A DNA stretch of 64,000 bases from Euprymna scolopes (taxonomy: Eukaryota): assembly GCA_053919585.1 (NCBI GenBank), contig CM132796.1, one strand, 5' to 3'. Positions 1,651 through 58,113 of this stretch are shown piece after piece. Within the stretch, counting starts at the first letter, position 1, and each line of letters begins with the position of its first letter. The position numbers and the translations under genes are program-made. The notes beneath the pieces are model-generated. The model was given only the letters and a program-made list of their open reading frames with translations, made no database searches and was not told the origin of the DNA.

Positions 1651-2311
1651 TGTCCGAAATTTATCCTCTTTCAGATAAATTCGACGCGAAAATAACAGCC
1701 TGCAAAAAAACTCAAAGGATGAAATAAAAAGGGGGTAAAGAATAAAATATAAAGGTCTTGTTTTAAAACGAAGAAGAGATTTTATTTAAAATGAAGTTGG
1801 TTGCAAATTTTTCCCTTTGCAGGCATTAAATACAAAACCAAAGAACGCCAAAGTAACAACATATAATGCAAAAAAATGCTACTTCTTATATTGAAAATGT
1901 CGTATTAATGAACGAATACAATATTATGATTCAAATAGTAGTTCCTAATCACTGTCTCATATGCAATACATTTTAGTAACGTACTCATAAATTGATGGCC
2001 GTCAGGCATGTGCCTTTTTCCTTTTTTTCTCAATTCAAAGTCCTTTAAAATTTCTCTCCTTCCAAATACATGCAAATCGTAGCCACGTAAATAAAGTTTT
2101 CAGAAGTTCACCTTGTCGCGTCCCGGTGCTCTGTTACCGGGTTATACTTCTTTGAAGGAGGGCTCTGGAAATTCCTTATCTGTGCCAGGCAATGAATTCA
2201 CGTCCACTTTCCAGGCCGCCGGAATCCAAAAGAGGCCGATTTTCGTGCTGGGACTCGTGACGTCATCATCAGGGCGCTAGCACCGCCTTCCCATTCAAAT
2301 TAAAGGGAGTT

Positions 2312-4861: not shown

Positions 4862-5055
4862 TGTTGTATTGTGTTTCGTATGGATACGAAACTTCCCTAT
4901 AGAACTCTCCCTGACGAAAGCGCTAGCTCTGTATACTACTCCAGTAGTGTCTGCCATGTTACTTTATAGTGCTGACGTCGGACCTGACGTATCGTTCTTT
5001 TGTGCTAATAAAAACCTTATTTAAAGGGTATACAGTATTTGTTTTACTTACGACA
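4862..5055 (+). repeat. 5' LTR of element A
   Basis: Direct repeat of 15987-16178; TG...CA ends; contains AATAAA. Confidence 0.95.
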
Positions 5056-5103
5056 ATTTTATTAGCACAAAAGGTTAAAAAAAAAAAGTAAAAGATTTTA
5101 AAA

Positions 5104-9763: not shown

Positions 9764-9952
9764 CATGAACACGTATTGTACTCTTTTCTTTCATGTGTTT
9801 CTTCACGAAATAAATTCTAGTCCGTTTAATTCAAATAAACGCGCTGTTCGTTCCTTCCTCAAAGCAATTCATTTTTCCTTTCTCAATGCAATTCATTTTT
9901 CCTATTTTGTACGACTGGGGGATATGTATAATATATCCACCAGTCTGCTACA

Positions 9953-10829
9953 ATAGTCATTCATTATTCTGAGATTGTGAATAAGTACACAAGCCTTGAC
10001 GCCTACCCCCTACCCCGGCTGGATGACGTAGTGAATAAGGTGGCTCAGTATAATGTATTCAGCACAATCGACCTGAAAAATGCGTATCACCAGATCCCCA
10101 TCAATGAGAATGACAAACCCTTCACTGCTTTTGAAGCTAACTCCGGTTTGTATCAGTTCACCCAATACAGCCGCTTCCCATTTGTATACCCTTGTAAAGA
10201 CACAAGTACCCAGAGTGTACTGCAATCTTGGTCCCACCTGTTTTCTATATTAGGCATGCTCAGCCAAGTTCATTCAGATAACGGGAAATTTTTCAAGAGT
10301 GCTGAGTACAAGAATTATATGCACAACAAAGGGATCTCCACCAGCTACAGCACTTCATATCACCCGCAGGGGAATAGTCAAGTGGAACGAATGAATGGAG
10401 CAGTGTGGAAAACTATTTCATTGGCATTGGAAGACTGAACACTGGGAAGAGGTTTTAGCAGACTCCCTCTATTCCGTTCGGTCTTTAATATCCACAGCCA
10501 CAAATGAAACACCTCATGAGCGCCTTTTTATACACCCAAGAAGATCAGTGTCCGGGACAGTGGTACCATCTTGGATGACAGAATCTGGTTTTGTTTTAAT
10601 GCGGAGACACAACCGGTTAACTAAATATGAATTTCTAGTTGATAAGGTTGAACTTCTAGATGCTAACCCCTATTATGCCTTTATTCGATCTAACGAGGGT
10701 AGGCAGATGACTGTATCTACACGTGACTTGGCCCTGTTGAAAGACTTCCAATTCACCAATCACCCACATGACTTGGAAAACTGGAATGATACACCAGCAG
10801 ATCAGCAAGATCAGCACCCCCACCAGTAG
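9953..10829 (+). pseudogene. Element A RT fragment fused to integrase core by internal deletion
   Basis: DAYPLP..DLKNAYHQI..GLYQFT joins in frame to QYSRFPF..HSDNG..YHPQGNSQVERMN; YxDD, RNase H and HHCC are missing. Confidence 0.88.
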
Positions 10830-11036: not shown

Positions 11037-14000
11037 TGTAGGGGATTAAAAATTAGAGGACACCGGGGGAGGAGTAATCTGCCCCTGCTCTAATGCTGGT
11101 TGGTTTTTCCCTTTGGTCACGGGCAGACGTGTTGCGTTTTCCCTCTCAAGGAGAGGAGAACCTTCGTTCCACCACGAGGTGAGCTCTGAGAACTTTTTCC
11201 ACCAAGCGGTGAGTCTTATCGAACTGTCGCTATTGTATTGTGTTTTATTGTTGTTTAAATGTTTGTCAGTGTATAATAAATGTGTAAACGTAATTGGGCA
11301 ATTGTGTTTATTCATATATTTTTTGTTTAGTTAAAACTAACAAATTGGTGACTCAGAGAAAATATATATGTACACGCGCATGCATAATAATAAGTTCTGT
11401 TTAAAAAAAGGTAAAATAATATTTTTATGAACAATAAGAAAAAGTTAGGATGTAAATTTTATTTCTAGAATTCTAATTATTATTCCCTAAATAAAAATTC
11501 GTAGGGTAGCGTAATTAAGATAGCAACACGATTTTTCTTTTATTCTTTACATATTTTTGTCGATAGAATAAGGATAGAACTAGGGTTTTGTTTTAATCGT
11601 GCACAACAAATGCAACAAGTTTTTTTTTTCGAAACTAAATTATCTCTCATAGGAAAATTTCGTTCCTGAAACGGCTGTCGGTATTCCTGTCAAATTCGGC
11701 GCCTGATACAGGATTGGCTGATATGGGCGAGTACGTTGCGTTCTGTCTCTGTGCCCCTTACCCTCCGTGTTGTATTATTACTATTCCTTTCTTTTCATGC
11801 CCTGCTGCTAGAGACTGTTGTAGTTTCCAGTGCGGTAAAATAAATAAATAAATAAATAAATAAATATATTTTTTTAAATGGCGATAACTTGTAATGTTAA
11901 TGCCTCGTTAGTTCGCGATGACCCTGTTTTGTTTTTTGCTCAACTCGATTTATTTTTCAAACAAAAATCGATTGACAACCAGGCAGAGAAATTCTGTTAC
12001 GTCGCATCCATTTTACCTCAGGATAAAATTACTGAGGTAAGAGAGTTAATAATCTCTCCACTTACAGAAAAGCCGTACGATGTACTTAAGGAGAGGGTCA
12101 CGACTGCTGTGACTGCTTCCACACATAAGCGTATTTCGCAGTTGTTGGAACAAGAGATCCTGGGAGATAGCAAGCCGTCCCAATTTCTAAAACGGTTACA
12201 AAAATTAGCTGAAGGTGGAGGGCCAAAAACGGTTGGAAGCCCGTATGGACAGAATGGCGGAAGACATCGCCAGACTATCATTAAAACAGAAGCAGCGACA
12301 TGGCAGTAGAGGAGGTCGCAGCCAGTCCCGGAAACGCAAGCAAGAAGCTATTTCTTGGAAGCACAAGAGATTTGGCGAAAATACCAACTCTTGTATTCCC
12401 CCTTGCAACTATAAGGGACAGGAAAAAGCCTAAACTGACAGATGAGAGCGGCATCAACTGTCGGTGCATCCTGCTCTGGCCGTCTACTTTATGTTGTAGA
12501 TAAAAATACAGGCATCTCGTTTTTGGTGGACAGTGGGGCACAAGTTTCCCTTATCCCGGCAACATCAATGGACAAAAGGTCTCCTCTCTGTAAATTTATC
12601 ATGCGAGCTGTAAACGGTTCGATAATACGGACTTATGGGGAGAGGTGCATGGACCTTAACTTGGGTTTACGCAGATCGTTTATCCACGTTTTCATATTGG
12701 CTGACGTAAGCAGTGCTATACTGGGTACTAACTTTCTGCAAGCATTTGGCCTGGTAGTAGATATGTCAGGCCAGTGTCTCCGAGATCCAAGCACACAACT
12801 TACAGCATGTGGGGTGGTGGGGACTGGCACACCATTAGGTTCACAGGTAGCACATGCAGACCAGGACGAAGCCTTCCTGAGTCTGTTGAAGGAATATCCT
12901 TCAATATCGGTCCCCTCCTTTCACAAGGAAGTGTTACCACACACTGTAACTCATTACATTGAGACAAAAGGCCCACCCGTCCATTGCAAAGCCAGACGTT
13001 TAACACTTGAAAAAATAAAGGCTGCGAAAGCAGAATTTCAGCAGATGATGCAGCTTGGCATAGTTCGTCCTTCAAATAGCGAATGAGCCTCGCCTCTTCA
13101 TCTTGTTAGTAAGAGTCTAAATGCATGGCGGGCATGTGGGGACTAGCGAGCTTTAAATGCCGCTACGAAACCAGATAGGTACCCAGTACCACATATCCAA
13201 GATATAACAACAGTGGCCCAGAATAATAGAGTATTTACTAAATTAGACCTTATTCGGGCATACCACCAGATCCCTGTGGAGCCCGAACATATTCCCAAAA
13301 CGGCAATTACCACACCGTTTGGAATGTTTGAATTTTTGCGTATTCCATTTGGTTTACGCAACGCAGCTCAAATGTTCCAATGTTTTATAGACCAGGTTCT
13401 GCGAGACTTGCCATGTGTGTGTGCATACATAGATGACGTCCTCATTGCTAGCAGGAATAGGCAGGAACACATAGATCATGTGCACCAAGTATTCGATCGC
13501 CTGAACCAATATGGTGTTATTTTAAATTCATCGAAATATACTTTTGGTCAATCTGAGGTTATATTTTTGGGGCACCATATTTCAGAGAAGGGAATTTCTC
13601 CATCCCCAGAGACAGTCAAGTCCATCCGAAATTTCCCTATCCCTGCTACAATGAGACAGTTGCGGCAATTTTTAGGATTAGTTAACTTCTATCGTAGGTT
13701 TCTCCCTCATGTTTCCTAAGTACTTTTTCCATTGACAGGTATGCTGACAAATGTGAAGAACTGCAACATTACACTATCGAAGGAAGCAATAGCAGCATTC
13801 AACAAAGTAAAGGCCATGTTAGAAGACACTGCAAAGCTGTCCCACATTCAACCCGATAGTGAACTTTGCCTGGCAGTAGATGCATCTGCAACTGGAATTG
13901 GAGCGGTTCTGCAGCAAAAATGTAATGGGAACTGGCGACCTATTTCTTTCTTCTCCAGGGAATTGACTGACGCAGAAACACGCTATAGCACATTTTCCAG

Positions 14001-15910
14001 AGAGTTGTTGGCCTCGTTTTCCGCAATAAGACATTATTGGCAGCTCCTAGAGGGACAGCCATTCTACTTGGTGACTGACCACAAGCCTCTATTAGGCGAT
14101 CTGCAGTCCTCCTCAGACAAATACTCTCCCTGAGAGGTTCGTCAGTTTACGTCGGATGTCAGACACGTGAAGGGAGCTGACAATATACCAGCAGATACAC
14201 TGTCACGAGGAATAAACTCCTTCATATTGGGACCTTCGGTCGAAGCTAACATCTTAGCTATGGAGCAAGAAAAAGACGAGCACCTGCAGAAGCTTCTGCA
14301 GAATAATGGAACATCACTGCAGCTGGTGAAAATAGCACACCCCAACAGCCCTAGAAAAATAGTGTGTGATATCAGCACAAACAAACTGCGCTCATATGTT
14401 CCAGCATCCTTAAGGAAAGACATATTCAACGCAGTACACGGGTTATCACACCCAGGGGCCAATGCGTCGATACGTTTGATGACAGACAGGTATGTCTGGC
14501 CGAGGATGAAAGCAGATGTGGGAGAATGGACAAAGAAATGCGTGCAGTGTCAAAAGGCCAAGGTCGGTCGACATACACGTGCACCACTAGGCACATTTCC
14601 AGTACCTGATGAGAGGTTCAAGCACATACACCTCGACATCACCGGTCCATTTCCGACATGTGAAGGCCAATGCTATCTTTTGACATGTGTCGACAGATTT
14701 TCAAGGTGGTTTGAAGCCTTACCAATGCCGAATATGACAGCATACACAACAGCCAGAACTTTCCTCACAGGATGGGTAGTAAGATTTGGTGTCCCGGAAA
14801 ATGTGACAACTGACAGAGGTAGACAGTTCGAGTCCGAACTGTTTCATAAACTCTCAGGACTTTCGGGCACCAGAAGTATACACACGACAGCATACCATCC
14901 ACAAGCAAACGGAGCAGTCGAACATCTACATCGCAGCCTAAAGGCCTCTTTACGCGCAGTGCTTACCAGCAATACAAAGTAGGTAGAATACCTTCCTCTA
15001 ATTTTGCTGGGTTTGCGCACAGCAGTGAAGAAGGATATGAATTGCTCAGCAGCAGAAGCGCTGTATGGTACCACACTACGCCTGCCAGCACAATACTTTT
15101 GTGATACACCAAATAAAGTTTGGGACCCTGCATTATTTGTTGATAAACTGACAAGAACCATGGCCAAAATGGCATATTCTCCATCAGGAATAAACAAGTG
15201 CGCTAACACATATGTGCCAAAGGCACTAGAGACATGCACACATGTGTTTGTTCACGATACAGCTAGGTCGCATACCCTGCAACCACCGTATCGCGGACCT
15301 TTTAAAATCAACAAGAAAAACAAGAAGTATTTCAGCATCCTCATTAAGGACGAAGAACAAAAAATCTCAATTGACAGGTTGAAACTCGCAACACTCGAGG
15401 ATACATATTTAGAAGTAGATCCCTCACAAAGGATGCCAGTCGAAGTGACATTGGAAAAACGCCCTTATAAAAAAAACATGTTCGGGGAGACAGGTGAAAT
15501 GGCCTGCCCATTTAAGAGACTTTGTCTCTACATAAAAAAAACAAAAAAAGCAATCCTCTCACAACATTTAATTAAAAGTACTCCGTTTTTTTTTTGGGGG
15601 GGGGGTTGTAGGGGACTAAAAATTAGAGGACACCGGGGAGGAGTAATCTGCCCCTGCGCTAAGGGTGGTTGGTTTTTCCCTTTGGTCACGGGCAGATGTG
15701 TTGCCTTTCCCTCTCAAGGAGAGGAGAACCTTCGTTCCACCACGAGGTGAGCTCTGAGAACTTTTTCCACCAGTCGGTGAGTCTTACCGAACTGTCGCTA
15801 TTGTATTGTGTTTTATTGTTGTTTAAATGTTTGTCAGTGTATAATAAATGTGTAAACGTAATTGGGCAATTGTGTTTATTCATATATTTTTTGTTTAGTT
15901 AAAACTAACA
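11037..15910 (+). mobile_element. Gypsy element B, CsRn1-type, full length but pseudogenised
   Basis: LTRs 11037-11342 and 15607-15910; TSD AACC; PBS TGGTGAC at 11346 (tRNA-Trp-like); poly-G PPT. Gag with DP.LFFAQ and CHCC-like WKHKRFG..SCIPPC; PR VDSGA; RT YIDD; RH DAS; IN HHCC/DDE; GPF/Y motif PPYRGPF. Confidence 0.95.
11878..15480 (+). pseudogene. Element B gag-pol
   Basis: Consecutive ORFs 11878-12433, 12442-13086, 13213-13719, 13732-14133, 14167-14982 and 15004 onward; the pol pieces are separated by single stop codons. Confidence 0.92.
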
Positions 15911-15986
15911 AACCCACCTTCATACACTTATAGTTGAATGGACTTTCCACCCACGGCAGGAACTTTCTAATTTAATGGAGGGGGAA

Positions 15987-23463: not shown

Positions 23464-24945
23464 ATGGAAAAATACACTGAAACAAATTTAACTAACAAAA
23501 TCTTTAGTATTGCTACTTCACAAACAAATTTGGAATCTGATGCTGGAGAGAAACCATATCGTTCTGAAGAATCTGATTCGTCATTTTCAAAGAACAGTAT
23601 AAAACTACATAAGGAGACAAAGAGATTTGAGAAACCACATTCTTGTGAAGTTTGTGGCTCTTCTTTTACACATAAATCAAATATGTTAAAACATATGCGA
23701 ATACATACTGGAGAAAAACCATATTCTTGTGAAGTATGTGGTACTTCTTTTAAAATGAAACAACATATGGTGCAACACATGCGAACACATACTGGGGAAA
23801 AACCATATTCTTGTGAAATGTGTGATTCCTCATTTGCACAACAATCACACTTGATGCGGCATATACGAACACATACCAGAGAATACCAAACATCAAAATC
23901 CATTATGTTACCACGCAAGCGAATTCATACTCAAAAAATGCAATATACATGTGAAATATGTGACTCATCTTTTACAGATAAATCTAATATGGCGATTCAC
24001 ATGCAAAAACATACAGGAGAGAAACCATATTCTTGTGAATTGTGTGATTCATCTTTTACGTATAAATCCAATATGGTGAAGCACCTAAAGACACATACTG
24101 GAGATAAACCGTTTTCTTGTGAAATATGTGGCTCTTCTTTTATAGATAAATCCAGTATGGTGATGCATACCCGAACACATACTGGAGAGAAACCCTATTC
24201 TTGTGAAGTATGCGGCTCTTCTTTTACACAAAAATCCAATATGTTGCAGCATAAGCGGGCACACACTGAAGGAAAACCATATCCTTGTGAAGTATGTGGC
24301 TTTTCATTTTCACACAAATCTAATCTGTTGAAGCACATACGAACCCATACTGGAGAGAAGCCACATACCTGTGAAGTATGTGGTTCTTCTTTTTCAAACA
24401 AATCTAACATGTTGAAGCATATGATAACACACACTGGCGAGAAACCTTATTCTTGTGAAGTGTGTGGTACTTCTTTTACATTGAAACACCACTTGCTGCA
24501 GCACATGCGAACACATACAGGAGAGAAACCACATTCTTGTGAAATATGTAGCTCTTCTTTTACACAGAAAGCACACTTGCTGCGACACAGGAGAACACAT
24601 ACTGGAGAGAAACCATATTCTTGTGAATTGTGTAGCTCCTGTTTTACAGATAAATACAATATGGCTATTCATATGCGAACACATACTGGAGAGAAACCAT
24701 ATTCTTGTGAAATATGTGGCTCTTCATTTACTCAGAAATCAAGTATGTTGAAACATGTTCGGGCACATACAGGAGAGAAGCCATATTCTTGTGAAGTCTG
24801 TGGCTCTTCTTTTACAGCAAAGCAAAATATGCTGCAACATCTACGTACACATACGGGAGAAAAACCATATTCTTGTGAGGTCTGTGGCTCTTGTTTTTCA
24901 AACAAATCCAATATGACGAAACATAAAAGGATACATAGTTTATAG
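23464..24945 (+). CDS. Tandem C2H2 zinc-finger protein, 15 intact fingers, no effector domain seen
   Basis: 493-aa ORF of CxxC-x12-HxxxH units with HTGEKPY linkers; candidate acceptor TTCAG ending at 23443. Confidence 0.93.
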   Translation: MEKYTETNLTNKIFSIATSQTNLESDAGEKPYRSEESDSSFSKNSIKLHKETKRFEKPHSCEVCGSSFTHKSNMLKHMRIHTGEKPYSCEVCGTSFKMKQHMVQHMRTHTGEKPYSCEMCDSSFAQQSHLMRHIRTHTREYQTSKSIMLPRKRIHTQKMQYTCEICDSSFTDKSNMAIHMQKHTGEKPYSCELCDSSFTYKSNMVKHLKTHTGDKPFSCEICGSSFIDKSSMVMHTRTHTGEKPYSCEVCGSSFTQKSNMLQHKRAHTEGKPYPCEVCGFSFSHKSNLLKHIRTHTGEKPHTCEVCGSSFSNKSNMLKHMITHTGEKPYSCEVCGTSFTLKHHLLQHMRTHTGEKPHSCEICSSSFTQKAHLLRHRRTHTGEKPYSCELCSSCFTDKYNMAIHMRTHTGEKPYSCEICGSSFTQKSSMLKHVRAHTGEKPYSCEVCGSSFTAKQNMLQHLRTHTGEKPYSCEVCGSCFSNKSNMTKHKRIHSL

Positions 24946-25519
24946 AAACGATATTCTTGTGAAATATGTGGATTTTGTTTTGCACAAAAATGAATTGTGG
25001 TACAGCACAAGTGAATGCATACTCGTAAGTGTCCCTAATATTGTTGGGATTAACAGAGATGAGAGCAAAAAGATAACGAAATACCAAAATCTTATGTACA
25101 ACATAAAAAGAAACTGGAATCTTAGGAAAATCTCTATCATTCTAGTACTTTTATAGGAGCAACCAGGCTCATGAAATTGCATTTTAAAAACTACCTGGCA
25201 AATATACCCGATAAATCAAGTGCAAGTGAGACACAAACATTTGCACTTAACTTACTGAACAATTAATAAAAAATAAAGAAACTACATATTTGTAAAATAT
25301 ATTGCTTTTCTTTCAAACTAATGAATTATGTTGACATATATGTAGTAGAAAGAAACTATTCTTGTTGAATTTTCTCTCGCAGAAATCAATGTTTATGTAT
25401 ATAATAAATTATAATGAAATCTAAGCTGATATACAATGTCAATTCAAGATTAGAAAATATTGAATTAATAAAAACTTGAAAAGCTTTTAAATAGAAATAA
25501 AAGTGCCGAGAACTGTTGT

Positions 25520-25642: not shown

Positions 25643-26191
25643 TTTTTAAATCGAATAAAATCCAATGATTACCGTATACTTTATGACTAAAGACTTACGC
25701 TAAAATATATAAATGGATCGTGCAGTTGCTTTTATCGTATTGTTTTTACATTCTCATGTTATATAATAGAACGCTCTCGTGTTATTTTTATATTTGAGTA
25801 ATAGTATGTGTACAATGTATATTATATTCCCAAAAATGGATGTTTATTTGAAAATTAATTTGCATATTATTGAGATCATTCCTTTCATTTGTTGATATTA
25901 CATATTAAACGTATTTTTATAAGAAATAAATATAATTTACAAATGAAAAAAATGTTAATCTTAAATGAAGTTGATTTCTACAGAACATGATTATGTGACC
26001 AATATATGTTGTAATGGGTTATATGTACTTGTAAGCACAATTCGAGTGCTAAACAATCCTCAATTCTTTTATCTTTATAATAAAGTAAAGTACACTTTTC
26101 TTTTCTTTGTTTGTTTTATTCCTATTCTAAATTTCTTACATTTCTCAGTCATACAACTTCTTTCAACGAAGTCATTTGTACATAAATCGAG

Positions 26192-26662
26192 GGTATTTTC
26201 ACTCTCATACTAAGATGTACTACACCAATATTACACCGAAATTATTTGCATGGAAATTTCTTTGGTATTTTCACTCTCACACCAATATTACACCGAAATT
26301 ATTTGCATGGAAATTTCTTTGGTATTTTCACTCTCACACCAATATTACACCGAAATTATTTGCATGGAAATTTCTTTGGTATTTTCACTCTCACACCAAT
26401 ATTACACCGAAATTATTTACATGGAAATTTCTTTGGTATTTTCACTCTCACGCCAATATTACACCGAAATTATTTGCATGGAAATTTCTTTGGTATTTTC
26501 ACTCTCACACCAATATTACACCGAAATTATTTGCATGGAAATTTCTTTGGTATTTTCACTCTCACACCAATATTACAGCGAAATTATTTGCATGGAAATT
26601 TCTTTGGTATTTTCACTCTCACACCAATATTACACCGAAATTATTTGCATGGAAATTTCTTT
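26192..26662. repeat. 57-bp tandem repeat, about 8 near-identical units
   Basis: Unit GGTATTTTCACTCTCACACCAATATTACACCGAAATTATTTGCATGGAAATTTCTTT; only 3 substitutions seen among the repeated units. Confidence 0.97.
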
Positions 26663-27527
26663 GAGCATAACACAGTTTTACTTTCATTTGTGCCTGTCAT
26701 GTACTCTATATTTTTATCCTAAATAATCATATCTGTTTCAAGCTCAGGTGTTCCGTTTTTATTAAAATTGCTTTCCTTCAAATAGCAATTTATAATAATT
26801 TTTCAGTTTTTCCACATTATCCGATTCATATGACAACGCAAAAATATAATTACAGAGTCATGCAAAATAAATTAAGTTTCTTGTTGAGATCTTTTTTTCT
26901 TCTTCATAATTAGAAAGACTATTTGAAAATAGCAGATTATGCTTCATTTATATTCGAACAACAAACATGGTCTCTGATTTACAAATGCAGCCTGTAAGGC
27001 CTTTTCTAAACAATTTTTATTTTAGTTCATTCTTTTAGTTATTGTTTTAATTCGACTTCTATGACAAATATTCAACTAAACATTATTTTGGTAATATTTT
27101 CATTCATTTGCAAATTAAGCAATATATATGTATCTAATTATTATTACAAGTGTATTTTTTTATAAAATAACTTCCATATACAAACATGGTTTCTTTATTA
27201 ATGTATCTTTTAAAATTGAGACGTCTTTAAAACAAAAATATTTTAATTACTATTGATGATTCGTATTTCTCATCTACATTTTTATTCTACATGTTAGCAT
27301 TGACTTTCACTTTGGATAAGAAGGTTTCTGTGTTTGTAGGTTAGGGGTTGGAAAAAATGGAAACGACGCCAACCCGATGCGGAATTAACTGACTTCTTCC
27401 AAGGAGGAAGTTCCATGGAAGTATGAAATTCACAAGTGGTCCCCAGTCGCATGTATATCCCCGTCAGGGGAGATGACGACATTAGGTTTTTGCAACTCTT
27501 GCAGGGAGGTGTCTAGAATTTACAAAT

Positions 27528-31110: not shown

Positions 31111-33078
31111 TTAAGATGTTGCCTGTTTGCATCCTTTTGTGTGACTGTAGAGACCAATTCTTGATTTGCATAGTCTGCCACAGCCTTGACATACGAAGGT
31201 TGTTATGCAATTTGCCGCTTCGTCCGGCTGTTCCGCCTGTACACTCGCTCTTCTCCTAGCTCTCTTTGCAGCATTTTCAACATGGAGGGTCCTCTCGCTG
31301 ATGATAATCCCCTGGCGTATCATTTTCCTCCAGGCAATTCTGTCAGCTGCAGAGGCTTCCCATGTATTCCTGTCCACCGAGAGAGCCTTCATGTCACGCT
31401 TGCAGACATCCCTGTAGCGAAGGTGGGGTCGCCCCCTCTTTCTTGAGCCTGAGGCAAACTCGCCATAGAGAAGGTCTTTAGGGATGCGCCCATCATCCAT
31501 CCTGTGCACATGGCCCAGCCAGCGAAGACGTCGCTCATGCAGTAGGGAGTAAATGGATGGGATGCCCGCTCTCTGCAGAACATCAGTATTACTCACTCTG
31601 TCCTGCCATGTGATACCAAGTATCCTACGTATACACCTCATATGGAAGACCTGGAGTTTCCTCTCTTGTGCTGAGTATGTAGTCCAGGATTCACTCCCAT
31701 ACAGTAGAACACTGAGGATGCACGCTCTGTAGACGGTCATCTTGGTGGAGGTGGTAAGGTGCCTGTTTTCCCAGACTCTTTTAGTTAGTTTAGAGAGGGT
31801 TGTAGATGCCTTTCCAATCCTTTTGTTTAGCTCCACGTCCAATGAGAGGGTGTCTGAAGTAGTGGAGCCTAGATATTGAAACTGGCGTACGACCTTTAGT
31901 GGTGTTCCTTGGATTGTGATGCTGGGTGGGGAGGCGGTTGCTTGTCCCATGACTTGAGTTTTCTTCTGGCTGATGGTGAGACCGAACAGGCTGCAAGCAT
32001 TAGCAAACCTGTCCATCAGTCTTTGAAGACCATCTTCCTGATGCGATGCTATAGCTGCATCATCGGCAAATAGCATGTCTCTTATCCGAACTGTCCTGGT
32101 CTTTGTCCTGGAGCTGAGTCTGGCGATGTTGAAGAGACCACCATCTGACCTGGAGTGCAAGCAGATACCATCCGTTGTGTTCTTGAAAGCATGCTTCAGG
32201 TGTAGCGAGAAGAAGATGCCGAAGAGTGTTGGGGCCAACACACAACCCTGTTTGACACCACTCCTCACCCCGAACTCAGCAGACATGCCACTGTTTAATT
32301 GCACAGTGCTCCTCATGCCATCATGAAAGGATCTTATGATGCTGAAGAGTTTTGGTGGGCATCCGATCAGTGGGAGAATTTTGAATAGTCCATCTCTGCT
32401 CACGAGATCGAATGCTTTGGTCAGGTCTATGAAGGCAACATACAGAGGCTGGTTTTGCTCTCTGCACTTCTCTTGCAGTTGGCGTAGGGAGAAGATCATA
32501 TCGATTGTTGATCTCTCTGAACAAAAACCGCATTGAGATTCTGGGTAGATTCGGTCAGCAAGAACGTTTAGTCGTAGTAATACTATACGTGCGAATAGCT
32601 TGCCAATGAAACTCAACAGTGAGATACCGCGGTAGTTGTTGCAGTCACCGCGGTCCCCTTTGTGTTTGTAGAGATTGATGATATTTGCGTCTCTCATGCC
32701 CTGAGGCACTGAGCCTTCTCTCCAACACTGTATCAGAAGACTATGGAGGGGCTCAAGCAGGCTAGCCTTTCCACTTTTTAAGACCTCAGCTGGAATATAG
32801 TCCTTTCCTGAGGCTTTTCCTGATGGCAGTCTGTCTATTGCCCAGGATAGTTCTTCTATGGAAGGCTCCTCATCGAGCTCATGCATCAGTGGTAGACGAT
32901 CAATGGCATCCAGGGCGGACTGATGTACCATGTTTTCCCTGGAGTAAAGCTCGGAGTAGTGTTCAACCCATCTGTCTAGCTGTTTAACTTTGTCTAGTAT
33001 GGGTTCACCCGATTTAGACTTCAGTGAAGCAGTTTTGTTAATTATGGGTCCTGTAGCTCTCCTGATCCCGTTATACAT
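31111..33078 (-). CDS. RTE LINE reverse transcriptase (uninterrupted 655-aa frame)
   Basis: NYRGISLL, FIDLTKAFD, GVKQGCVLAP, FADD, YLGS, C-terminal CxxCGRxCxSRIGLxSH typical of RTE. Confidence 0.93.
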   Translation of the reverse strand: MYNGIRRATGPIINKTASLKSKSGEPILDKVKQLDRWVEHYSELYSRENMVHQSALDAIDRLPLMHELDEEPSIEELSWAIDRLPSGKASGKDYIPAEVLKSGKASLLEPLHSLLIQCWREGSVPQGMRDANIINLYKHKGDRGDCNNYRGISLLSFIGKLFARIVLLRLNVLADRIYPESQCGFCSERSTIDMIFSLRQLQEKCREQNQPLYVAFIDLTKAFDLVSRDGLFKILPLIGCPPKLFSIIRSFHDGMRSTVQLNSGMSAEFGVRSGVKQGCVLAPTLFGIFFSLHLKHAFKNTTDGICLHSRSDGGLFNIARLSSRTKTRTVRIRDMLFADDAAIASHQEDGLQRLMDRFANACSLFGLTISQKKTQVMGQATASPPSITIQGTPLKVVRQFQYLGSTTSDTLSLDVELNKRIGKASTTLSKLTKRVWENRHLTTSTKMTVYRACILSVLLYGSESWTTYSAQERKLQVFHMRCIRRILGITWQDRVSNTDVLQRAGIPSIYSLLHERRLRWLGHVHRMDDGRIPKDLLYGEFASGSRKRGRPHLRYRDVCKRDMKALSVDRNTWEASAADRIAWRKMIRQGIIISERTLHVENAAKRARRRASVQAEQPDEAANCITTFVCQGCGRLCKSRIGLYSHTKGCKQATS

Positions 33079-33207
33079 ATTTTTTATATTTCCTGTATCA
33101 GCTGCATGCTAGATAGACTTGGAGAGCTCCATCCAGTAGTTGTTTGCAGCTTCTCTTACAGCCTTTTGAACTGCCCTTTTGGAAAGCCTAGGCAAAAAGG
33201 AAGCAGA

Positions 33208-33320
33208 GTGCGTAAGTCTTCCCTGCCAGTACATAGCCTCTCCATAGGAAAGCTCCATGTAGTGCCTCCCCGCGGTGACACATGTAAATTGAGTACCTTG
33301 CGGACTCAAGCAGAACTACA
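33208..33320 (+). ncRNA. HDV-like ribozyme fold at the RTE 5' end
   Basis: P2 TGTAGT/ACTACA, P3 GCC/GGT, L3 TCCCCGC, P4 TTGAGT/ACTCAA, J4/2 G-CAGA, imperfect P1 GTGCGT/ACACAT. Confidence 0.7.
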
Positions 33321-33939
33321 GGAGACTCGGAGGTGGTCTGCCCCCAGACATGCGGCATGCCAGGCCCATCGTTGTATGGACAAGCCCTGATGCCCATGAA
33401 CAGGCCCCCAGCTATGGGTAAATAGTACCACTGCCTTGTGGTTATTCGTTGGTTCGATAAAGGCTAAGGGAGTACATCCTAACAGAAAATCTGGAGTGTA
33501 GCCCCACAGGCAGACAAGTGCTGTACTCAGCCTTGCTCTGGTAGCTACTGCAGTCAACCTGGTGCCAGACGTACTGGTACTTCCATTCCTCTGGGCAACA
33601 CCAGCAAGACCGAGAGGGGGATTCTGACGATTGGGCAACCCAGTCTCTCCACAGATCCGCCCTGGCCAGCGCCCTGGAGAGAAAACTTCAGCTATGCATC
33701 TGTATAGGACTAAACAGGGGAGCGACAGTTACCGGTTATAAGCCTACAGCTCAATTGGCGTACAGCTGGGCGCCAGGGGTCGGTCCTAACGGTGGGAAAA
33801 GTTATTTAATTTCATTGGACAGCTACCGCCCGCCACAAAGCTGAGCAGCCCTCGGTCAGTAAGGTGCTATCCCGCCACTGGCTACCTACCCTACTGGGTG
33901 CGTAGGGTATAGGATGATTCCAACAAGTGGCCAGTAACC

Positions 33940-35075
33940 ATTGCACCAAACAAAACCAAAAGAAACACAAAGAACCCAACACTCAGGATAGGGTGCTGGA
34001 ATGTTCGTACTATGACGACTGGCCTATCTACCGACATACGCAACATCTCTGATATTCGAAAAACTGCCATCATCAACAACGAGCTATCGAGACTCAAAGT
34101 AGACATCGCTGCACTCCAAGAAACACGCTTAGCTAACACCGGATGCCTAAAGGAATCGGACTATACCTTCTTCTGGCAAGGAAAACAGGAAGAGGAGGTC
34201 CGGGAACACGGTGTTGGTTTCGCAGTCAGAAACTCACTGCTTCAGAACGTACAACTCTCTGATTCAGCTACTGAGCGCCTAATCTCACTACGACTGAACA
34301 CCACAGATGGAACAATTAATCTATTATGTGTGTACGCCCCAACACTCACAGCGCCTGACGACATCAAGGAGCACTTCTACACACAGCTGGATAGCACCAT
34401 CAAGGCATTTCCACAAAATGAAGACCTGATTATACTTGGGGACTTTAATGCACGTGTGGGTGGCGACAACGATGCATGGCCGAGCTGCCTTGGTAACTTT
34501 GGAGTGGGCAAATGCAATGGTAACGGTCAGCGCCTTCTAGAACTCTGTGCCTACCATGACCTCTGCATTACCAACACATTCTTTGCTGCCAGACTGCATC
34601 ACAGAGTGTCCTGGAGACATCCCAGATCAGGGCGTTGGCACCAGCTCGATCTAATCATTACTAGACGAAGGTACCTCAAACATTTTCTGATGTCTAGAGC
34701 CTACCACAGTGCTGATTGTGATACAGATCATTCCCTAATATGCAGCAGAGTCAAACTTCAACCCAAAATTTCTACCACACTAAACAGGAGGGTGTTGCCG
34801 GTATTGATGTTAGCAAGACCACATACTCAGATCGCAATGCGAAATTCAATGAGATGTTAACCTCCACCTTCAAAGGAGATAACACCCGGACTGCATCTGA
34901 ACAGTGGGAAACACTGAAAAATGCCATCCACTCTACAGCTCTCAAAGTCTTTGGGAGGAGGATAGGTAGCAAACGCAATGACTGGTATGATGCCAACTCT
35001 GCTACCCTCAACCCTCTGATTGAGGCAAAGCATTTGTCCTTGCTCTCATACAAGGCCAACCCATCTCCTACATCG
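33940..35075 (+). pseudogene. RTE apurinic-like endonuclease and linker (inverted part)
   Basis: IGCWNVRT, ALQETR, GVGF, VYAPT, LGDFNAR, LDLI, TDH; frameshift near 34765. Confidence 0.93.
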
Positions 35076-37519
35076 CTGGGCGAAAGTATGCACTAACAAA
35101 AAGGAGGGCACAAGAAAATACAGCCAAACAAAAACGACGAACAGCCAAAAGCAGCCGCAAGAAAACAGATACAGAAAGCGGAACAGTAAAATCTGCTCAG
35201 TAAAATCTGAGCCCAAGGAGATGTATAGAGAATTGTAGCAGTTAAACTTTAATGCGATTCATCAGCCAAAAGACAAGCGTATTGAAGTAATAACGGAACT
35301 TAAAATAAAGCTTCTCAATAGACCAGGCACTCATATACTCAAAGCAAAGGTGGACACAGGTGCAGAAGAGAATACGCTTCCTCTACGAACTTTTCGAAAC
35401 ATGTTTCCCAACAGAGTTGATGACTTAGGACAACCCATTCCAGGCTCCACAAAGAAAGAGCACACGATTCTGGCGGCATACAACGGCTCAAACATAATAC
35501 AGCATGGATCGATCTACATACAATGCGGACACAAAGACAAGTGGAAAACTTTAAAATTCTTTGTTGTCACAACAGAAGGGCCTACAATCATAGGATTACC
35601 TTCTCTCAGAGACTTGGAGCTGATAAGCCTCCACTGCACCATTCAACAAAAGAAAGATCCGATTAACTCCGTCAGCGAATTAAAAAATGCATATGCAAGT
35701 CAGTTCGATCGCATAGAACATTTTAAAAGTGACTACCACATCGTCCTACAATCTGATCATCCTCCAGTAATACATGCACCGAGGAAATGCCCTATCCATC
35801 TTAGAGAAGAAATAGAAGAGGAGTTGAAATCCATGGAAGCCCAAGGCATCATCAGAAAGGTCACCGAACCGACTGAATGGGTCAGCAGCATAGTATATGT
35901 TCGAAAGAAGAATGGACAACTTCGCTTATGCCTTGACCCAAAGGATCTGAACCGGGCAATAATGAGATGTCATTACAAGACTCCCACCATGGAAGAACTA
36001 GCACACAAGCTCAACATTTCTCCAAGCTAGATGCCAAAAACGGATATTGGTCCATACCTCTTGACGCAGAATCCCAATTACTAACGACCTTCAACTCACA
36101 ATTTGGGAGATACTGTTTCCAAAGAATGACATTTGGTCTGGCAATGTCACAGGATTTATTTATGCAGAGAATGGACATGATACTGGAAAAATGCCCTAGT
36201 ACAATTGGACTAATAGATGATGTTATCGTCTTCGGAAAGACTAAGGAGGAGCACGACAGCAACCCCCACCGGCTTATGGAAGTAACACAAACGGAAGGAT
36301 TGTGTTTTAATTGTGATAAATGTGAGATAGATGAAAAGCAGATAAGCTTTTTGGGGGCTATCTATGACAAGAACGGCATTAAACCAGATCCTAGTAAGGT
36401 AGAAGCTATAAAGCAGCTTCCCAGCCCTACCAACGTCAAAGAATTGCAAAAAGTGTTGGGAATCATCACTTACTTGTCACCATTCATTCCGCGCCTATCA
36501 GACTTAACTGCCCCCATGAGAGATCTGTTAAAAACAGAAGCAGAGTACCAGTGGACTGCAAGTCACCAGAAGGCTATGCAGAAAATAGAGGATGAGATCT
36601 GCAAAGAAATGTCTCTCGCTTACTTCGATCCAATGAAAGAGACAAGCCTACAGGTAGACGCCTCAAACAAGGGTCTAGGTGCAGTACTCTTGCAAGAAGG
36701 AAGGCCCATTGCATTTGCATCAAAAGCTCTAACAGCAACAGAACAAAGGTATGCAAACAGAGAGAGAGAGCTTTTAGCTGTAGTTTTTGGCTGTGAGCGC
36801 TTCAAAACATACCTATATGGAAGCAAATTCCAAGTAGAAAGCGATCACAATCAGTTGGAAATGATCAGCTTAAACATCTAATTGCTGCTCCACCTCGTTT
36901 GCAACGCATGCTGCTGCGCCTACAATGATATGACATGACCATCATGTATCGCCCAGGTAAGGAAATTACCCTGGCGGATGGATTCTCCTGACTACCCAAC
37001 AGAAGGAGTAACGAGGAGATCGACCTTAATATTCGAGTTGACTTTGTCCAATTTTCTGCTAAAAAAGTAACACAGATAAAGCTAGCAACGAAAGCCGACC
37101 CTATACTCTGTGAACTTAAGGAAACCATCCTGCATGGCTGGCCCAATACATCCAGGGAAATAAGCAAAAATTTGCAGCCATATTAGTCGTATCGGGATGA
37201 GCTGGCCATCGAAAATGGAATTTTGATGAAGAGTAATCGGATAATTATACCCAAAGTGATGCAGCAAGAAATCCTACAAAAATCCATTATGGTCATCAGG
37301 GTATGGAAAAATGCAAACTGCGGGCAAAAAGTTGTGTCTTTTGGCACAACATTAATAAAGATATAGACAGCATCACACAACAATGTACCATATGTCAACA
37401 GCACCAAAAAGCCCAGAGTGCAGAACCTCTGATGCCACATGAGATTCCTGTAAGGCCCTGGCAAGTAGTGGCCACTGACCTGTTCCACAGTGAAGGTCAC
37501 AATTACCTGCTGATGGACC

Positions 37520-47109: not shown

Positions 47110-48124
47110 AAGTGCTGGGAGTACGGTTTCCCATTGAGCTTCTGGGAGGTTTCTAGAGGCTAGCGCTAGTTGTACGTGTTTCCAGACAATGCCGTTGTAG
47201 CGTTCACATTGTCCATTCCCTTGAGGGTTATATGGAGTCGTTCGACTGGTTGCTATGCCTAAACCGGTAAGGTATTCCCGGAGTTCCTTTGACGCAAATG
47301 AAGACCCGCGATCGGTGTGGATATATGAGGGCATTCCAAAAATGGCGAATAACTGGTTTATACACTTAATCACCACATCTGTTGTCATATTTGGACAAGC
47401 GAAGGCGAATGGGAAGCGCGAATATTCGTCGATCACTACCAACATATATCGATTTTTGGAGTTAGAAGGTAAGGGTCCTTTGAAGTCCATGCTGAGTCGT
47501 TCCATTGGTTGTGTGGCCTTAATTAGTTTCGCTGCGTCTGGTGTGTGGAAACGAGGTTTCCAACGGGCACATACAGGACACTCAGCACATACCTTTTTAA
47601 CCTCTTCTATCGAGTATGGCAGGTTTCTAATTTTTATGAAGTGAGTTAGTCTGGTGGTGCCTGGATGACAGAGTCGAGTATAGAGGTCGAATAGTTTTTC
47701 TCTGCTAACGACAGCTCCACAATGTGCTCTTGATAGTGTGTCAGCAGGGATGTTATTCTTGCCTGGGCGGTACATTATGTCGTAGTCATAACACCCCAGC
47801 TCCATCCTCCATCTTTGGATCTTATTGTTTTTAATTTTACCTAGTCTCTCTGAGTGGAACATGTAATGCACTGCTTGTTGGTCGGTGACAATTGTAAAAT
47901 GTCGAGTAGATAAATAGTGGGACCATTTTTGACAGCTTCGACTACTTTCTCGACTGAGGCGTGTTTACGCTCAGTGGGTGTTAGTGTACGTGAGAAGAAA
48001 GCCACAGGACGACCGGCTTGTGTCAATGTAGCCGCAACACCTGTATCAGAGGCGTCTGTTTCCACTACCAGTGGGATATTCTCATCGATGGAGTGTAGTA
48101 AGGCACCCTTGATCTCCTCTTTGA

Positions 48125-48174
<50 letters not shown>

Positions 48175-50581
48175 GGCATCACCACATTATCAAGGCCCAG
48201 AGGCCACTCAAGGATAAGGGTTAAAGAGTGTACTTCACGGCATTTTGCTTCAGGGGGAAGGAGTCGGCTATTATCAAGGATCTGATCTTGTCTGAAAATT
48301 TGGGAATCCACTGAGAGTAGTATGAAAACAAATCGACAACTCGCCGTAGTGCCGCTTTATCTCTTGGGGTTGGCAGTTCCTTCAGTGGCCGTAATCTTTC
48401 TGCGTCGGGTTTTATTTTACCCTGAGATATAGTGTAGCCCAAAAAATCAATAGATTCTGTTAATATAACAGATTTATTTTCATTGAAGGTCAGGTTGTGT
48501 AGCCGAGCTACCTCCCTGAATTTTGTGAGGTTCTTATCATGTTCCTGCTGGGTCATTCCTACCACTACTATGTTGTCTACGTACACATAGGTACCAAGGA
48601 GGCCGTTTTGTTTTACTCGATTATCTATGGTTCTTTGGAAGCAGGCCACTCCATTCGTGACTCCAAATGGTACTCTACAAAATTGGTATAATTTCCCGTT
48701 AGCTTCAAAAGCCATATACGGTTTTTCTTCCTCCCGAATAGGTATCTGGTGATAGGCGCTTTTTAAGTCTAGTGATGTGTATAGTTTATATCGGGAGATT
48801 TCCCACGCCAAGTCATCCATTCTAGGTAAGGGGTAAGCATCAAGTTTTGTAAATCTATTGTAATCAACCACCAGTATTTTTCTTTGTCGTTCATTCGAGA
48901 CAATAAGAACTTGAGCTCTCCACGGAGATGTACTCTCTTCAATTACCCCCTCCTGAAGCATCGTATTTATTTCGGATCCGATAAAGTTTCTTTCATTGCC
49001 TCAGAATCTCCTAGATCTAGTAGCAATGGGTTTGCAGTTAGGTGTAAGGTTTGAAAAAAGTGGGGGACTGTCTACTGAAGCTGACGGTACGCTGCATGCA
49101 GTAGGGTTAGACACGACAAGATCTTTCCTAGGACCACTGAAAGCAAACAAGACTCCAGAATGTTGTCTCATGAAATCCTGACCAAGGATGACATCACTGC
49201 AAAGATTTGGTAGTACAGAGAGAGGAGTATTTGGGTAAGACTCACCTAGCAAGTTGAGGTTGACTGAGCAAAGTCCTTTTACTGGAGCGTTCAGTGGCGA
49301 AGAGGCCATAGAGACGGATCCTGAAGCGGGTTTTATTGTTAATTTATTTCTTTTCGCGTAGTCGAGCAAAATGAAATATCCAGAGCTCCTGGTGTCCATT
49401 AATGCCGCAACTTCATTTTTTCCAATCATTATGTATACAGTGGCTTGCCTTAGTATCGATGAAGAGGAACAAAGAGAAAAAGCTGCCGTTGAATCTGAAG
49501 CTACTTTTACGGGTGCGGGCTTATTGTTGTTTGTAATAGTAGCAAGTCTGTGTGTTTCAGTTGACGAATGTATTGAAGTTGAAGTAGTTGTATTTGACCT
49601 GGACCGACAGACTTTCGCGTAATGGCCGATTTTGTTACATCGGCGACACGTGCTTTCCTTAGCTGGGAAGAATTGGCGATTGTGACGTGGTCCGTTGCAG
49701 AAATAACACTGTGATTTTGTGCTGGGGAGCGCGGCACAATTTTCCATCGTTGAAACGTTCCCATTCTCGGTTGTAGAAGCACTGACTGGTGGAAAATAGC
49801 GCGAATAAGATTCGCAGTTTTTCTGAGCTGAGTCGAGTGCCCTAGCTTGGTCAATGGCGGTATCTAGGTCGAGAGTCCTGTTTTCCAATAACCGTTGCCT
49901 GATGGTGTTCGATCGTAGACCGGTAATAAAAGTGTCTCTTACACTATCATCCCGGTTTGGAGCCACGTCAACTGCTTTAAAATTACATTCTTTTGATAGA
50001 AGTCGTAATTCTTGTACGTACTCGTCAATGGTTTCTCCCTCTTTTTGTGCGCGAGTTGACAGCACGTGTCTGGCGAAAATTTCGTTGATGGGTTTAACGT
50101 ATAATTCCCTGCGTCGATTGATTGCTGCCTCGTAGGTTTGTTGCTCCGCTACGTATTCATAGCCATCCGAGGAAATGTACGTAATCAACAGGTCTAGTTT
50201 ATCGATATCATCCCGTATTTCAGTTCTCCTCATCAAAGCCGAAAAAGTCCGATACCAGTGGTTGAATATTTTCGTAGAGGAAGCGCTGTTAGGAAGTGTA
50301 TCCAGTTTATCAGGTTTTAAGAATTTGTCTATCTTCGTGCTTTCGTAGTTATATATATTTAATATTTTATCGTGTATTAAATTGAAGTGAGTAGAAAAAA
50401 AGACAGAAATAACCTTAAACGGAAGGCTTTAATACAAGATAAAATATATACAGGGCTGTTTTCTTTAGAATATAGTTCTCTACCGAAGAGCGTATAGACA
50501 AGGGGGAGATTATACACGCTAAGTAAACACGATTAACGTTATTGGTGAAGAGGGAATAACTCCGTATCGTCATATATTACA
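47110..50581 (-). mobile_element. Gypsy element F (same lineage as A), 3'-truncated
   Basis: Putative 5' LTR 50581-50383 (TG...CA). Gag (M>I)DKFLKPDKLD at 50332 is homologous to A; RT YVDN (DD mutated); RH ETDAS; IN SMDFKGP..HTDRG..YNPQGNGQCER. Confidence 0.92.
48130..48233 (-). mobile_element. Extremely 5'-truncated LINE 3' end with ~40-nt poly(A), inserted in F
   Basis: Reverse complement nearly identical to 22340-22413. Confidence 0.92.
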
Positions 50582-51329
50582 AGTGCCTAAAGAAATCCTT
50601 CGAAACTGAGGAAATTATTAATGTCAGCGTAATTTTATGAAGAAAACCCTGCAAATGCAAAATAAGAGGAGGGAAAACGTTTGTGAGCATAAAATATTCA
50701 TCCATTGTTGTTTGCGTGAGCTTCATTAGTAAGAGATTGGGTAATTTGTCCGTTTACAGACAGTATGTCATGACGACTTTTACTAGTGCAGATTTTTATG
50801 TCGAGAGACAGAGTAAGCAAATCAAATTGTTCCTGAAATGAATAAAATCCGGCTGTATAGATTTTTCTGATTACGTAGTGAACAAGTTGATTTAGCTGGT
50901 CACTTCATACCCCCCTCACTAAATGGAACGTGGATACACAGGAAAAGAACAAAAATACTGCAACTGGGTGTAGGTAGCAAATTAACAATATATACTTATC
51001 TTACATCATATTCTAGTTCAAACAAAAACTAACATAAACACATACTTTGTTTTAGTGAATAAAATGCAAAAGACAATTAAATTTAGAGATTCAATTTATC
51101 ATATAAATTAAACGGAAAATGGTCACTTAATTCTCGAATACATAAATCCCGTCAAATTTCACAAGTATTGCATTTCAAGGCCATATAAGCTCAGATGGTA
51201 TTTAACCTTTTCTGTAAAAAGTTAAAACTCTGCATGGTCTACGTCCACCAACTCCTCCTCGTCAATTATGTCATTTTCTCAGACAATACAGTATTGTGTG
51301 AATGTACTTCCTCCTTTCATCAATATATT

Positions 51330-57237: not shown

Positions 57238-58113
57238 TTACGCAAATAATGATTCTTTCTTTTTGTGAGTTTGCATGTGCCTTTTTAAAGTTGATTTCAC
57301 TGTAAATGCTGAGCCACACACTTCACAAGAAAAAGGTTTTTCTCCAGTGTGTGTTCGCATGTGTGTCTGCAAGTTTGATGTGTTTGAAAACGAAGAACCA
57401 CATACTTCACAGCTGTGAGGTTTTTCTCCAGTGTGTGTCCGCATATGAATCTTTAAGTTTGATGTCATTGTAAACGACGAGCCACACAATTCGCAAGAAT
57501 ATGGTTTCTCTCCAGTATGAGTTCGCATGTGCAGTTTTGCCTGTGCCGATGTTGCAAAAACTGCACTGCACATTTCGCAAGGATAAGGTTTGTATCCAGT
57601 GTGTGTTTGCATATGGCGTTTTAAATTTGATTTTTCTGAGAAGGAAAAATCACATACTTCACAAGCATGAGGTTTTTCTCCAATGTGAATTCGCATATGT
57701 TTCGTCAATGCTGACGTCATTGAAAATGCAGAACCACATACTTCACACGAGTATGGTTTTTCTCCTGTGTGAGTTCGCAAGTGATTCTTTAATGTTGACG
57801 TCATTGAAAATGAAGCTTTGCACACGTGACAAGAATAAGGTTTCTCGCCAGTGTGTGTTCTCATGTGGACTTGCAGACTATATTTCCTTGCAAATGCTGA
57901 GTCACACACCTGACATGGATAAGCGTTCTCTACAACATGTGTGCGCATGTGTTTCTGAAAGAGTGCTATCACTGTAAATGTTAATCCACACTCTTTGCAG
58001 GAAATATTTTCTCCATTGTGTGATCGCATATGAATTTGTAAGTTCGATTTTTTCGGAAACGATGCTCCACAAATTATACATGAAACAGGTTTGTCTCCAG
58101 TTTGCATGTGCAT
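57238..58113 (-). CDS. Tandem C2H2 zinc-finger protein, 10 intact fingers
   Basis: 291-aa ORF with HTGEKP linkers; candidate acceptor TTCGCAG near 58213. Confidence 0.92.
   Translation of the reverse strand: MHMQTGDKPVSCIICGASFPKKSNLQIHMRSHNGENISCKECGLTFTVIALFQKHMRTHVVENAYPCQVCDSAFARKYSLQVHMRTHTGEKPYSCHVCKASFSMTSTLKNHLRTHTGEKPYSCEVCGSAFSMTSALTKHMRIHIGEKPHACEVCDFSFSEKSNLKRHMQTHTGYKPYPCEMCSAVFATSAQAKLHMRTHTGEKPYSCELCGSSFTMTSNLKIHMRTHTGEKPHSCEVCGSSFSNTSNLQTHMRTHTGEKPFSCEVCGSAFTVKSTLKRHMQTHKKKESLFA

Follow-up and report, generated by a model that had tools for sequence, protein, structure and literature searches.

Primer sites complementary to their own long terminal repeats in an animal Ty3/gypsy lineage point to Tf1-type self-priming

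The DNA studied here (the window) is a stretch of 64,000 nucleotides (nt) of the squid Euprymna scolopes, from contig CM132796.1 of the GenBank assembly GCA_053919585.1, in which several retrotransposons, designated A, B, D and F, were recognized. We are concerned with element F, a Ty3/gypsy element on the minus strand, in which the bases directly past the 5' long terminal repeat (LTR) are complementary to a segment of the same LTR. The original prediction, made from the letters of the window, took this arrangement as a tRNA-independent priming system shared by a whole lineage. As described below, the duplex recurs with different sequences in related elements of several animal phyla, and self-priming is its probable function. 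The features of F, in their minus-strand order, are as follows.

50383-50581, minus strand: 5' LTR of F, 199 bp, TG..CA, with both edges set by other genomic copies
50469-50475, minus strand: TATA-like CTATATT, lying 22-28 nt before the paired segment, read from the sequence and conserved among F copies
50428-50447, minus strand: paired LTR segment and putative self-primer, ending in ATTAAA (50433-50428), from the pairing and the covariation across families
50412-50427, minus strand: small hairpin GCCTT(loop)AAGGT immediately 3' of the paired segment, from the minimum-energy fold
50383-50411, minus strand: U-rich LTR tail, putative downstream poly(A) element and U5, a role suggested by its position 17-45 nt past ATTAAA
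50362-50381, minus strand: primer-binding site complementary to F's own LTR, with a single A (50382) between LTR end and site, from sequence, copies, shuffles and covariation
50330-50332, minus strand: position of the gag start codon, ATA in the window copy and ATG in other copies, from a 30-copy alignment and tblastn with gag N-termini
47115-50332, minus strand: remnant of gag, protease (PR), reverse transcriptase (RT), RNase H and integrase (IN), from Pfam and from blastn against a full copy

The window copy of F extends from 50581 to 47115, corresponding to element nt 1-3396 of about 4113, and is thus 3'-truncated. Between RT and RNase H, at 48131-48233, it is interrupted by about 100 bp of inserted sequence that includes a long T/A run. 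No 3' LTR of F was found within the window, and full copies were therefore taken from the genome to set the LTR limits. A genome search scored 40 further matches among 399 candidates, and 29 copies were fetched. Homology to all 29 begins at 50581 (TG, TGTAATAT..), which is the outer edge of the LTR, and the matches to solo and 3' LTRs end at 50383, its inner edge. Five full copies of 4071-4132 bp have two LTRs each, 95-98.5% identical within a pair; a polypurine tract, AAGGATGGGAGAA, adjoins the 3' LTR, and 5-bp target duplications are perfect in one of the five and show one mismatch in three. The LTR limits assumed at the outset were thus right, being fixed by the 29 copies, the five full elements, the target duplications and the polypurine tract. 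A different boundary followed by a TGG-type site was looked for, as had been set out beforehand, and does not apply: the F site starts TTTAAT one nt past the LTR, and there is no TGG anywhere in the leader.

The coding part is a single gag-pol frame of about 1190 codons, in which Pfam recognized zf-CCHC (a zinc knuckle), gag-asp_proteas, RVP_2, RVT_1, RT_RNaseH, Integrase_H2C2 and rve. On the 522-amino-acid C-terminal piece of pol, where rve and Integrase_H2C2 matched, Pfam found no Chromo domain. The order PR-RT-RNase H-IN, the TG..CA LTRs, the 5-bp duplications and the polypurine tract are those of Ty3/gypsy elements (Metaviridae), and F is a compact (about 4.1 kb) Ty3/gypsy retrotransposon with a single open reading frame (ORF) and without a chromodomain. 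Assignment to BEL/Pao was rejected, there being no Peptidase_A17 or DUF1759-type Pfam match and the protease being of the gag-asp_proteas/RVP_2 kind, and so was assignment to Troyka, which has CG..CG ends and 3-bp duplications. A search of 50250-50650 against Rfam gave no family match.

On the minus strand the F LTR closes with ..TTCA (50384-50383), followed by the single A and by TTTAATACACGATAAAATAT at 50381-50362. The LTR 20-mer ATATTTTATCTTGTATTAAA at 50447-50428 pairs with this site at 19 of 20 positions and is separated from the LTR end by 45 nt (50427-50383). Pairing, LTR end at CA (50383), coordinates and spacing are all as first described for the minus strand, and the CCTT..AAGG hairpin after the paired segment (50427-50412) and the upstream CTATATT (50475-50469) are both present. 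The best LTR-site match in 20,000 shuffles of the F LTR was 17/20. An 86-nt stretch of F folds with −16.3 kcal/mol (z = −4.55), and in a copy with perfect pairing the fold reaches −22 kcal/mol (z = −7.6), a long stem enclosing the small hairpin. Over 30 F copies, pairing is 20/20 in 10, 19/20 in 16, 18/20 in three and 16/20 in one, the mismatch of the window copy being private to it. Changes fall evenly on the two arms (12 on the primer side and 14 on the site side), the pattern that neutral decay would leave after insertion.

Element A, which lies on the opposite strand, had been described as having the same geometry, and this was confirmed at its coordinates.

4997-5073, plus strand: replicate in element A, with primer at 4997-5013 (ending AATAAAA), hairpin, LTR end at 5055 and site at 5057-5073 (17 bp)

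Here 42 nt lie between primer and LTR end, and the LTR start at 4862 was set by 39 other copies. Nine other copies of family A examined in the squid keep the family's own 17-bp duplex. The pol of A is about 39% identical to that of F. The two elements thus have different sites in one genome, each matching its own LTR, so that no single host RNA fits as primer for both. Elements B and D, with pol 28-31% identical to that of F, had been proposed as internal controls with ordinary TGG sites, and TGG was read directly in both. Element B (11138-15912, 4.8 kb, with 207-bp LTRs that are 99% identical) has TTGGTGAC after the LTR at 11344, a TGG-type site (TTGGTGACTCAGAG) following the 5' LTR, and gives 8 for LTR-site pairing. 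In element D, near 30095, ACA is followed by TGGTGGCAAC, again of the TGG type.

With a pol piece of F as query, over 1,800 related proteins were matched, each about 1,200 amino acids long and mostly on contigs of about 4 kb; named sources among the matches were Argonauta, Mytilus, Biomphalaria, Armadillidium, Actinostola, Oculina and Trichuris. Scanning metagenome contigs with a profile yielded 80 loci with 36-61% identity. Two tests were used to look for the duplex. In the unanchored test, the longest inverted repeat within 230 nt before gag was determined for 47 related loci; in about 30 of them it is the same LTR/site duplex, 11-18 nt exact, compared with shuffles in which the longest repeat averaged close to 7 and never exceeded 13, and with one or two mismatches allowed about 37 loci carry it. 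In these relatives an LTR stretch ending in TAAA (AGA in one family) pairs with the bases that follow ..ACA or ..TCA and one A. In the cognate test, LTR ends were taken only from the alignment of the LTR pair (11 loci). Pairing of an LTR with its own site extended over 13-20 nt in nine of the 11, compared with a mean of 6.4 and a maximum of 10 for non-cognate combinations (n = 110) and a mean of 5.6 and a maximum of 9 for internal windows of the same elements. The possibility that relatives would show no pairing above the AT-rich background was not borne out in these tests.

The duplex was present in all four named genomes that were fetched: Mytilus edulis (16 bp, LTR pair 100% identical), Biomphalaria glabrata (15 bp, 100%), Actinostola (13 bp, 100%) and Armadillidium (14 bp, 99.3%). 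Among these four the full ORF was confirmed intact in Biomphalaria (1,219 codons) and in Armadillidium (1,203 codons) only; translation of the Mytilus and Actinostola loci did not reproduce the query protein. Judging from these sequences, the lineage is large, recently active and present in molluscs, cnidarians and crustaceans.

The site past the LTR pairs with the element's own LTR over 11-20 nt in each of 25 distinct families, and the paired sequences differ from family to family. These families were aligned over 16-nt arms, 15 pairs were counted, and the result was compared with 500 shuffles, none of which reached the observed value in any of three measures. Standard pairs were formed in 95.7% of cells (68.9% in shuffles), a percentage that is inflated by the choice of the 25 families from loci with an intact duplex; not inflated by this choice is the number of cells changed on both sides, 83 compared with 19.1 ± 3.1. 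The covariation score was 0.657 (0.152 in shuffles) and dropped to 0.05-0.10 when the register was slid by 1-3 columns. Double-sided changes were seen in 13 of the 15 pairs. The same process is visible at close range in two loci of one assembly, L044 and L051 (4233-4311 in each), which are identical at 240 of 246 positions (97.6%) over LTR and leader and differ by one compensatory pair, a primer base and its partner in the site, each locus having its own variant in both LTRs. Similarly, F and an 86%-identical relative have U5 in common and differ in the duplex by compensatory changes. The claim that the pairing is lineage-wide and kept while its sequence changes was therefore upheld, both by the covariation over 25 families of several phyla and by the compensatory pair of L044 and L051. 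Some features hardly vary across phyla: AAA/TTT at the duplex end, the G-C pair formed at position 10, and the RCC that follows the duplex directly. Alignment columns 8 and 15-19 reflect this constraint on the primer (3' AAA, G ten bases in, and RCC past the putative cut site).

Minus-strand synthesis must start beside U5, and whatever pairs there is consequently the primer. As the sites begin with TTT and the CCA end of a tRNA needs TGG, no tRNA 3' end fits in this role. The simplest account of a match to the element's own LTR that is kept by compensatory change is self-priming of the Tf1 type. We therefore consider it likely, with a probability of about 0.72, that F is a decayed, 3'-truncated copy of a Ty3/gypsy element whose lineage starts reverse transcription in this way, without a host tRNA. 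Of the original proposal of tRNA-independent, lineage-wide priming, the parts that concern the sites (which fit neither a tRNA 3' end nor a shared host RNA) and the pairing (kept by covariation) hold as observations, and the priming itself is what we infer from them.

The following course of events would fit. A stretch of 13-20 nt from the 5' LTR, placed at or near the 5' end of the RNA (in F 20 nt, ending in AUUAAA), would fold back onto the site 1-2 nt past the LTR end and thereby close a loop made up of the short hairpin and U5. Where the duplex ends, after ..UAAA (in F after 50428), the element's RNase H would cut the strand derived from the LTR, and the new 3' OH would be extended through U5 and the hairpin to give a strong-stop DNA of about 46 nt in F, which would then be transferred to the 3' repeat. 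Plus-strand synthesis would copy the RNA primer back into the site and so keep the arms complementary from cycle to cycle; such copy-back would account for the pairing being perfect in young copies and for the complementarity ending sharply. For F this scheme predicts an RNA start near 50447, a short effective repeat region (R) consisting of the hairpin region, and a poly(A) site about 15-25 nt past ATTAAA, ahead of the U-rich tract.

The RNA of Tf1 pairs with the primer site through its first 11 nt, and the RNase H cut falls between nt 11 and 12 (PMC7175516); Tj1 of S. japonicus is a further self-primed Ty3/gypsy element (PMC4600332). The lineage of F resembles Tf1/Tf2 of Schizosaccharomyces pombe and Tj1 in having no tRNA site and, beside the 5' LTR, a site complementary to its own LTR-derived RNA (PMC7175516, PMC4600332). 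It also resembles them in that the primer 3' end lies opposite the first base of the site and in that gag and pol share a single ORF. In contrast to Tf1, whose primer consists of the first 11 mRNA nucleotides, the duplex in the F lineage measures 11-20 nt, with a 5' limit read from the sequence, and ends in a conserved UAAA followed by RCC; moreover, the elements lack a chromodomain, occur animal-wide and measure about 4.1 kb. Self-priming is predicted from LTR-site complementarity in the vertebrate Tf1/sushi group and in Tcn1-like chromoviruses of fungi and mosses (PMC6317226, PMC2864245), from which F differs by a pol C-terminus without a chromodomain and by hosts among molluscs, cnidarians and crustaceans. 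Plant TAR copia elements, which lack a tRNA site and are predicted to use a self-primer (PMC6317226), differ from F in superfamily, domain order and hosts.

In overall build, F resembles the Mag lineage (mosquito Mag-like families) and bivalve Steamer-like elements, animal Ty3/gypsy elements that are likewise compact, mostly have one ORF and have LTRs of about 150-200 bp; these elements, however, carry tRNA-Leu, Ser, Arg or Asn sites (PMC3286476, PMC11046912). Mag C LTRs have the motifs TGTNATRT..AYANAACA (PMC3601003 Table 3). The start of the F LTR, TGTAATAT, fits the first of these and its 3' end, ..CACTTCA, fits the second poorly, the likeness to Mag C being one of LTR motif; the LTRs of the relatives end in ..ACAACA or ..ATAACA. 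The full-text literature searched, with subscription papers outside its scope, contained no description of self-priming in any Ty3/gypsy lineage of invertebrates that lacks a chromodomain. On the most probable reading, a known mechanism is at work here in an apparently undescribed animal lineage.

Besides the selection of the 25 families mentioned above, several observations weigh against self-priming in the F lineage. About 10 of the 47 loci are without the duplex, most of them decayed or truncated members of families that have it, and the F copies themselves are old (LTR pairs 95-98.5% identical). Lacking a chromodomain, F by this test stands outside the Tf1/sushi clade. No TATA box was found at a constant distance across the related families. 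RNA data do not supply the ends of the transcript either. F-family sequence is present in contigs of four poly(A)/oligo-dT RNA-seq runs, a presence that does not by itself establish transcription. These contigs end 30 nt inside the LTR edge, where a 31-mer graph breaks at the repeat boundary, and their ends are a k-mer branching artefact instead of a transcript start or poly(A) site. Likewise, Logan contigs of the relatives L121, L139, L140 and L141 either stop 30 nt into the LTR or have a circularly permuted order, and hence yield no transcript ends, and no contig among L041-L126 ends in a poly(A) tail.

The main rival accepts the same complementarity and places the segment in U3, with transcription starting downstream of it. 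The segment would then be present only near the 3' end of the RNA, as in retroviruses with a U3 poly(A) signal, and the primer would come from this 3' copy, which would pair with the site and be cut or act in trans, or from another packaged RNA. R need not include the segment. The F segment begins inside TATATATTTTAT, which could serve as a TATA box, and the conserved WTWAAA at the segment end could be a weak TATA-like box; the segments of most families, however, are unlike TATA boxes. The sharp stop of the complementarity after 11-20 nt is fitted better by a primer bounded by the RNA 5' end; unbounded upstream RNA would go on being copied by plus-strand synthesis. Such a scheme would also sacrifice one RNA or sever R, and none is documented. 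We consider it improbable, though the least improbable of the alternatives.

A stem that is purely regulatory or structural, serving to occlude the 5' copy of the poly(A) signal or to switch between translation and packaging while some other primer is used, is less likely still, because nothing else at the LTR edge could prime: there is no other candidate site at this edge, the sites differ between families in one host so that no shared host primer fits, and the 3' arm starts 1-2 nt beyond the LTR end, at the very point from which minus-strand synthesis has to proceed if it is to define this end. In HIV-1, stems are known that conceal a 5' poly(A) signal, and in most families the paired arm contains AATAAA or ATTAAA, yet eight of 25 families have no canonical signal there; in L044, L048 and L091 the site adjoins the start codon. 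A chance match, or an ordinary TGG site concealed by wrong placement of the LTR boundary, would draw on the AT-richness of the region and on the lack of a 3' LTR for comparison in the window copy. Both are refuted, and we give them practically no weight: none of the 20,000 shuffles reached 18/20, the boundary was set by the 29 copies, the five full elements and the target duplications, the leader is free of TGG, and the same geometry with different, covarying sequences is found in 25 families.

The overlap of the primer with the poly(A) signal, which the original prediction treated as part of the system, is common and no rule. Of the first 21 families, 13 have ATTAAA or AATAAA as the last six bases of the primer; of the four named genomes, three also have a canonical hexamer there, and the fourth, Mytilus, has one that straddles the primer end. 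In total, 17 of 25 families have AATAAA or ATTAAA at or across the primer 3' end, and the remaining eight have GTTAAA, TTTAAA, TTAAAA, ATAAAA or TGAAGA, with a canonical hexamer further on, in U5, in L042. The duplex may mask the poly(A) signal of the 5' LTR, a speculative idea. The HIV-1 5' poly(A) hairpin is an RNA structure able to hide a promoter-proximal poly(A) signal; in the F lineage the hiding partner would instead be the primer site, which is present only downstream of the 5' LTR. A hairpin after the paired segment, proposed for F and A, is present in both and common in the lineage without being universal. The RCCT..AGGY hairpin follows the duplex directly in about 15 of 25 families, and in a permissive test for any hairpin (16 of 25 families, compared with 55% of shuffles) the enrichment was not significant, and we do not claim it as a counterpart of the U5-IR-like stem-loop between primer and site in Tf1-type elements. 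The site ends 1-5 nt before the gag AUG in L044, L048 and L091, which suggests that the duplex, by covering the region just upstream of this codon, could act as a switch between translation and reverse transcription. In locus L053 (3995-4120) the motif CACAATTTAACCAACTT occurs twice before gag, about 60 nt apart, and looks like a duplicated primer site.

Self-priming has so far been shown for fission-yeast Tf1, and predictions of it concern mainly fungal, vertebrate and moss chromoviruses along with some copia elements of plants; the same signature now appears, with strong covariation, in a very large and recently active animal lineage. Annotation tools that require a tRNA match will mislabel or miss such elements. 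The finding bears on whether self-priming is ancestral in LTR retroelements, and elements of this lineage may escape tRNA-fragment defences. For each family there is now a precise prediction of RNA start, cut site and strong-stop DNA length. A much broader view, which we hold to be doubtful as a whole, would have a Ty3/gypsy lineage extending from cnidarians to molluscs and crustaceans replicate without a host tRNA, from a self-primer built on the poly(A) hexamer. One duplex would then both prime and hide the promoter-proximal signal, and in some families also cover the region before the AUG. As the lineage has no chromodomain, self-priming would on this broader view have arisen independently of Tf1/sushi or be older than tRNA priming in the superfamily, and it would provide an escape from repression by 3' tRNA fragments.

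Some further observations concern the neighbourhood. Element A is broken just past the gag start by three diverged copies of one unit, each roughly 2 kb long (direct repeats at 5370, 7392 and 8952; window positions 5370-9430), and fragments of its pol lie at 6679-7402 and 9938-10366. At 31111-35096 an RTE-like non-LTR reverse transcriptase ORF (minus strand) and an endonuclease-like ORF (plus strand) are inserted in the gag region of D. Finally, AT-rich parts of the window contain tandem arrays at 23526-25055, 26108-26777 and 57264-58040, with periods of 84, 57 and 84 bp, respectively.

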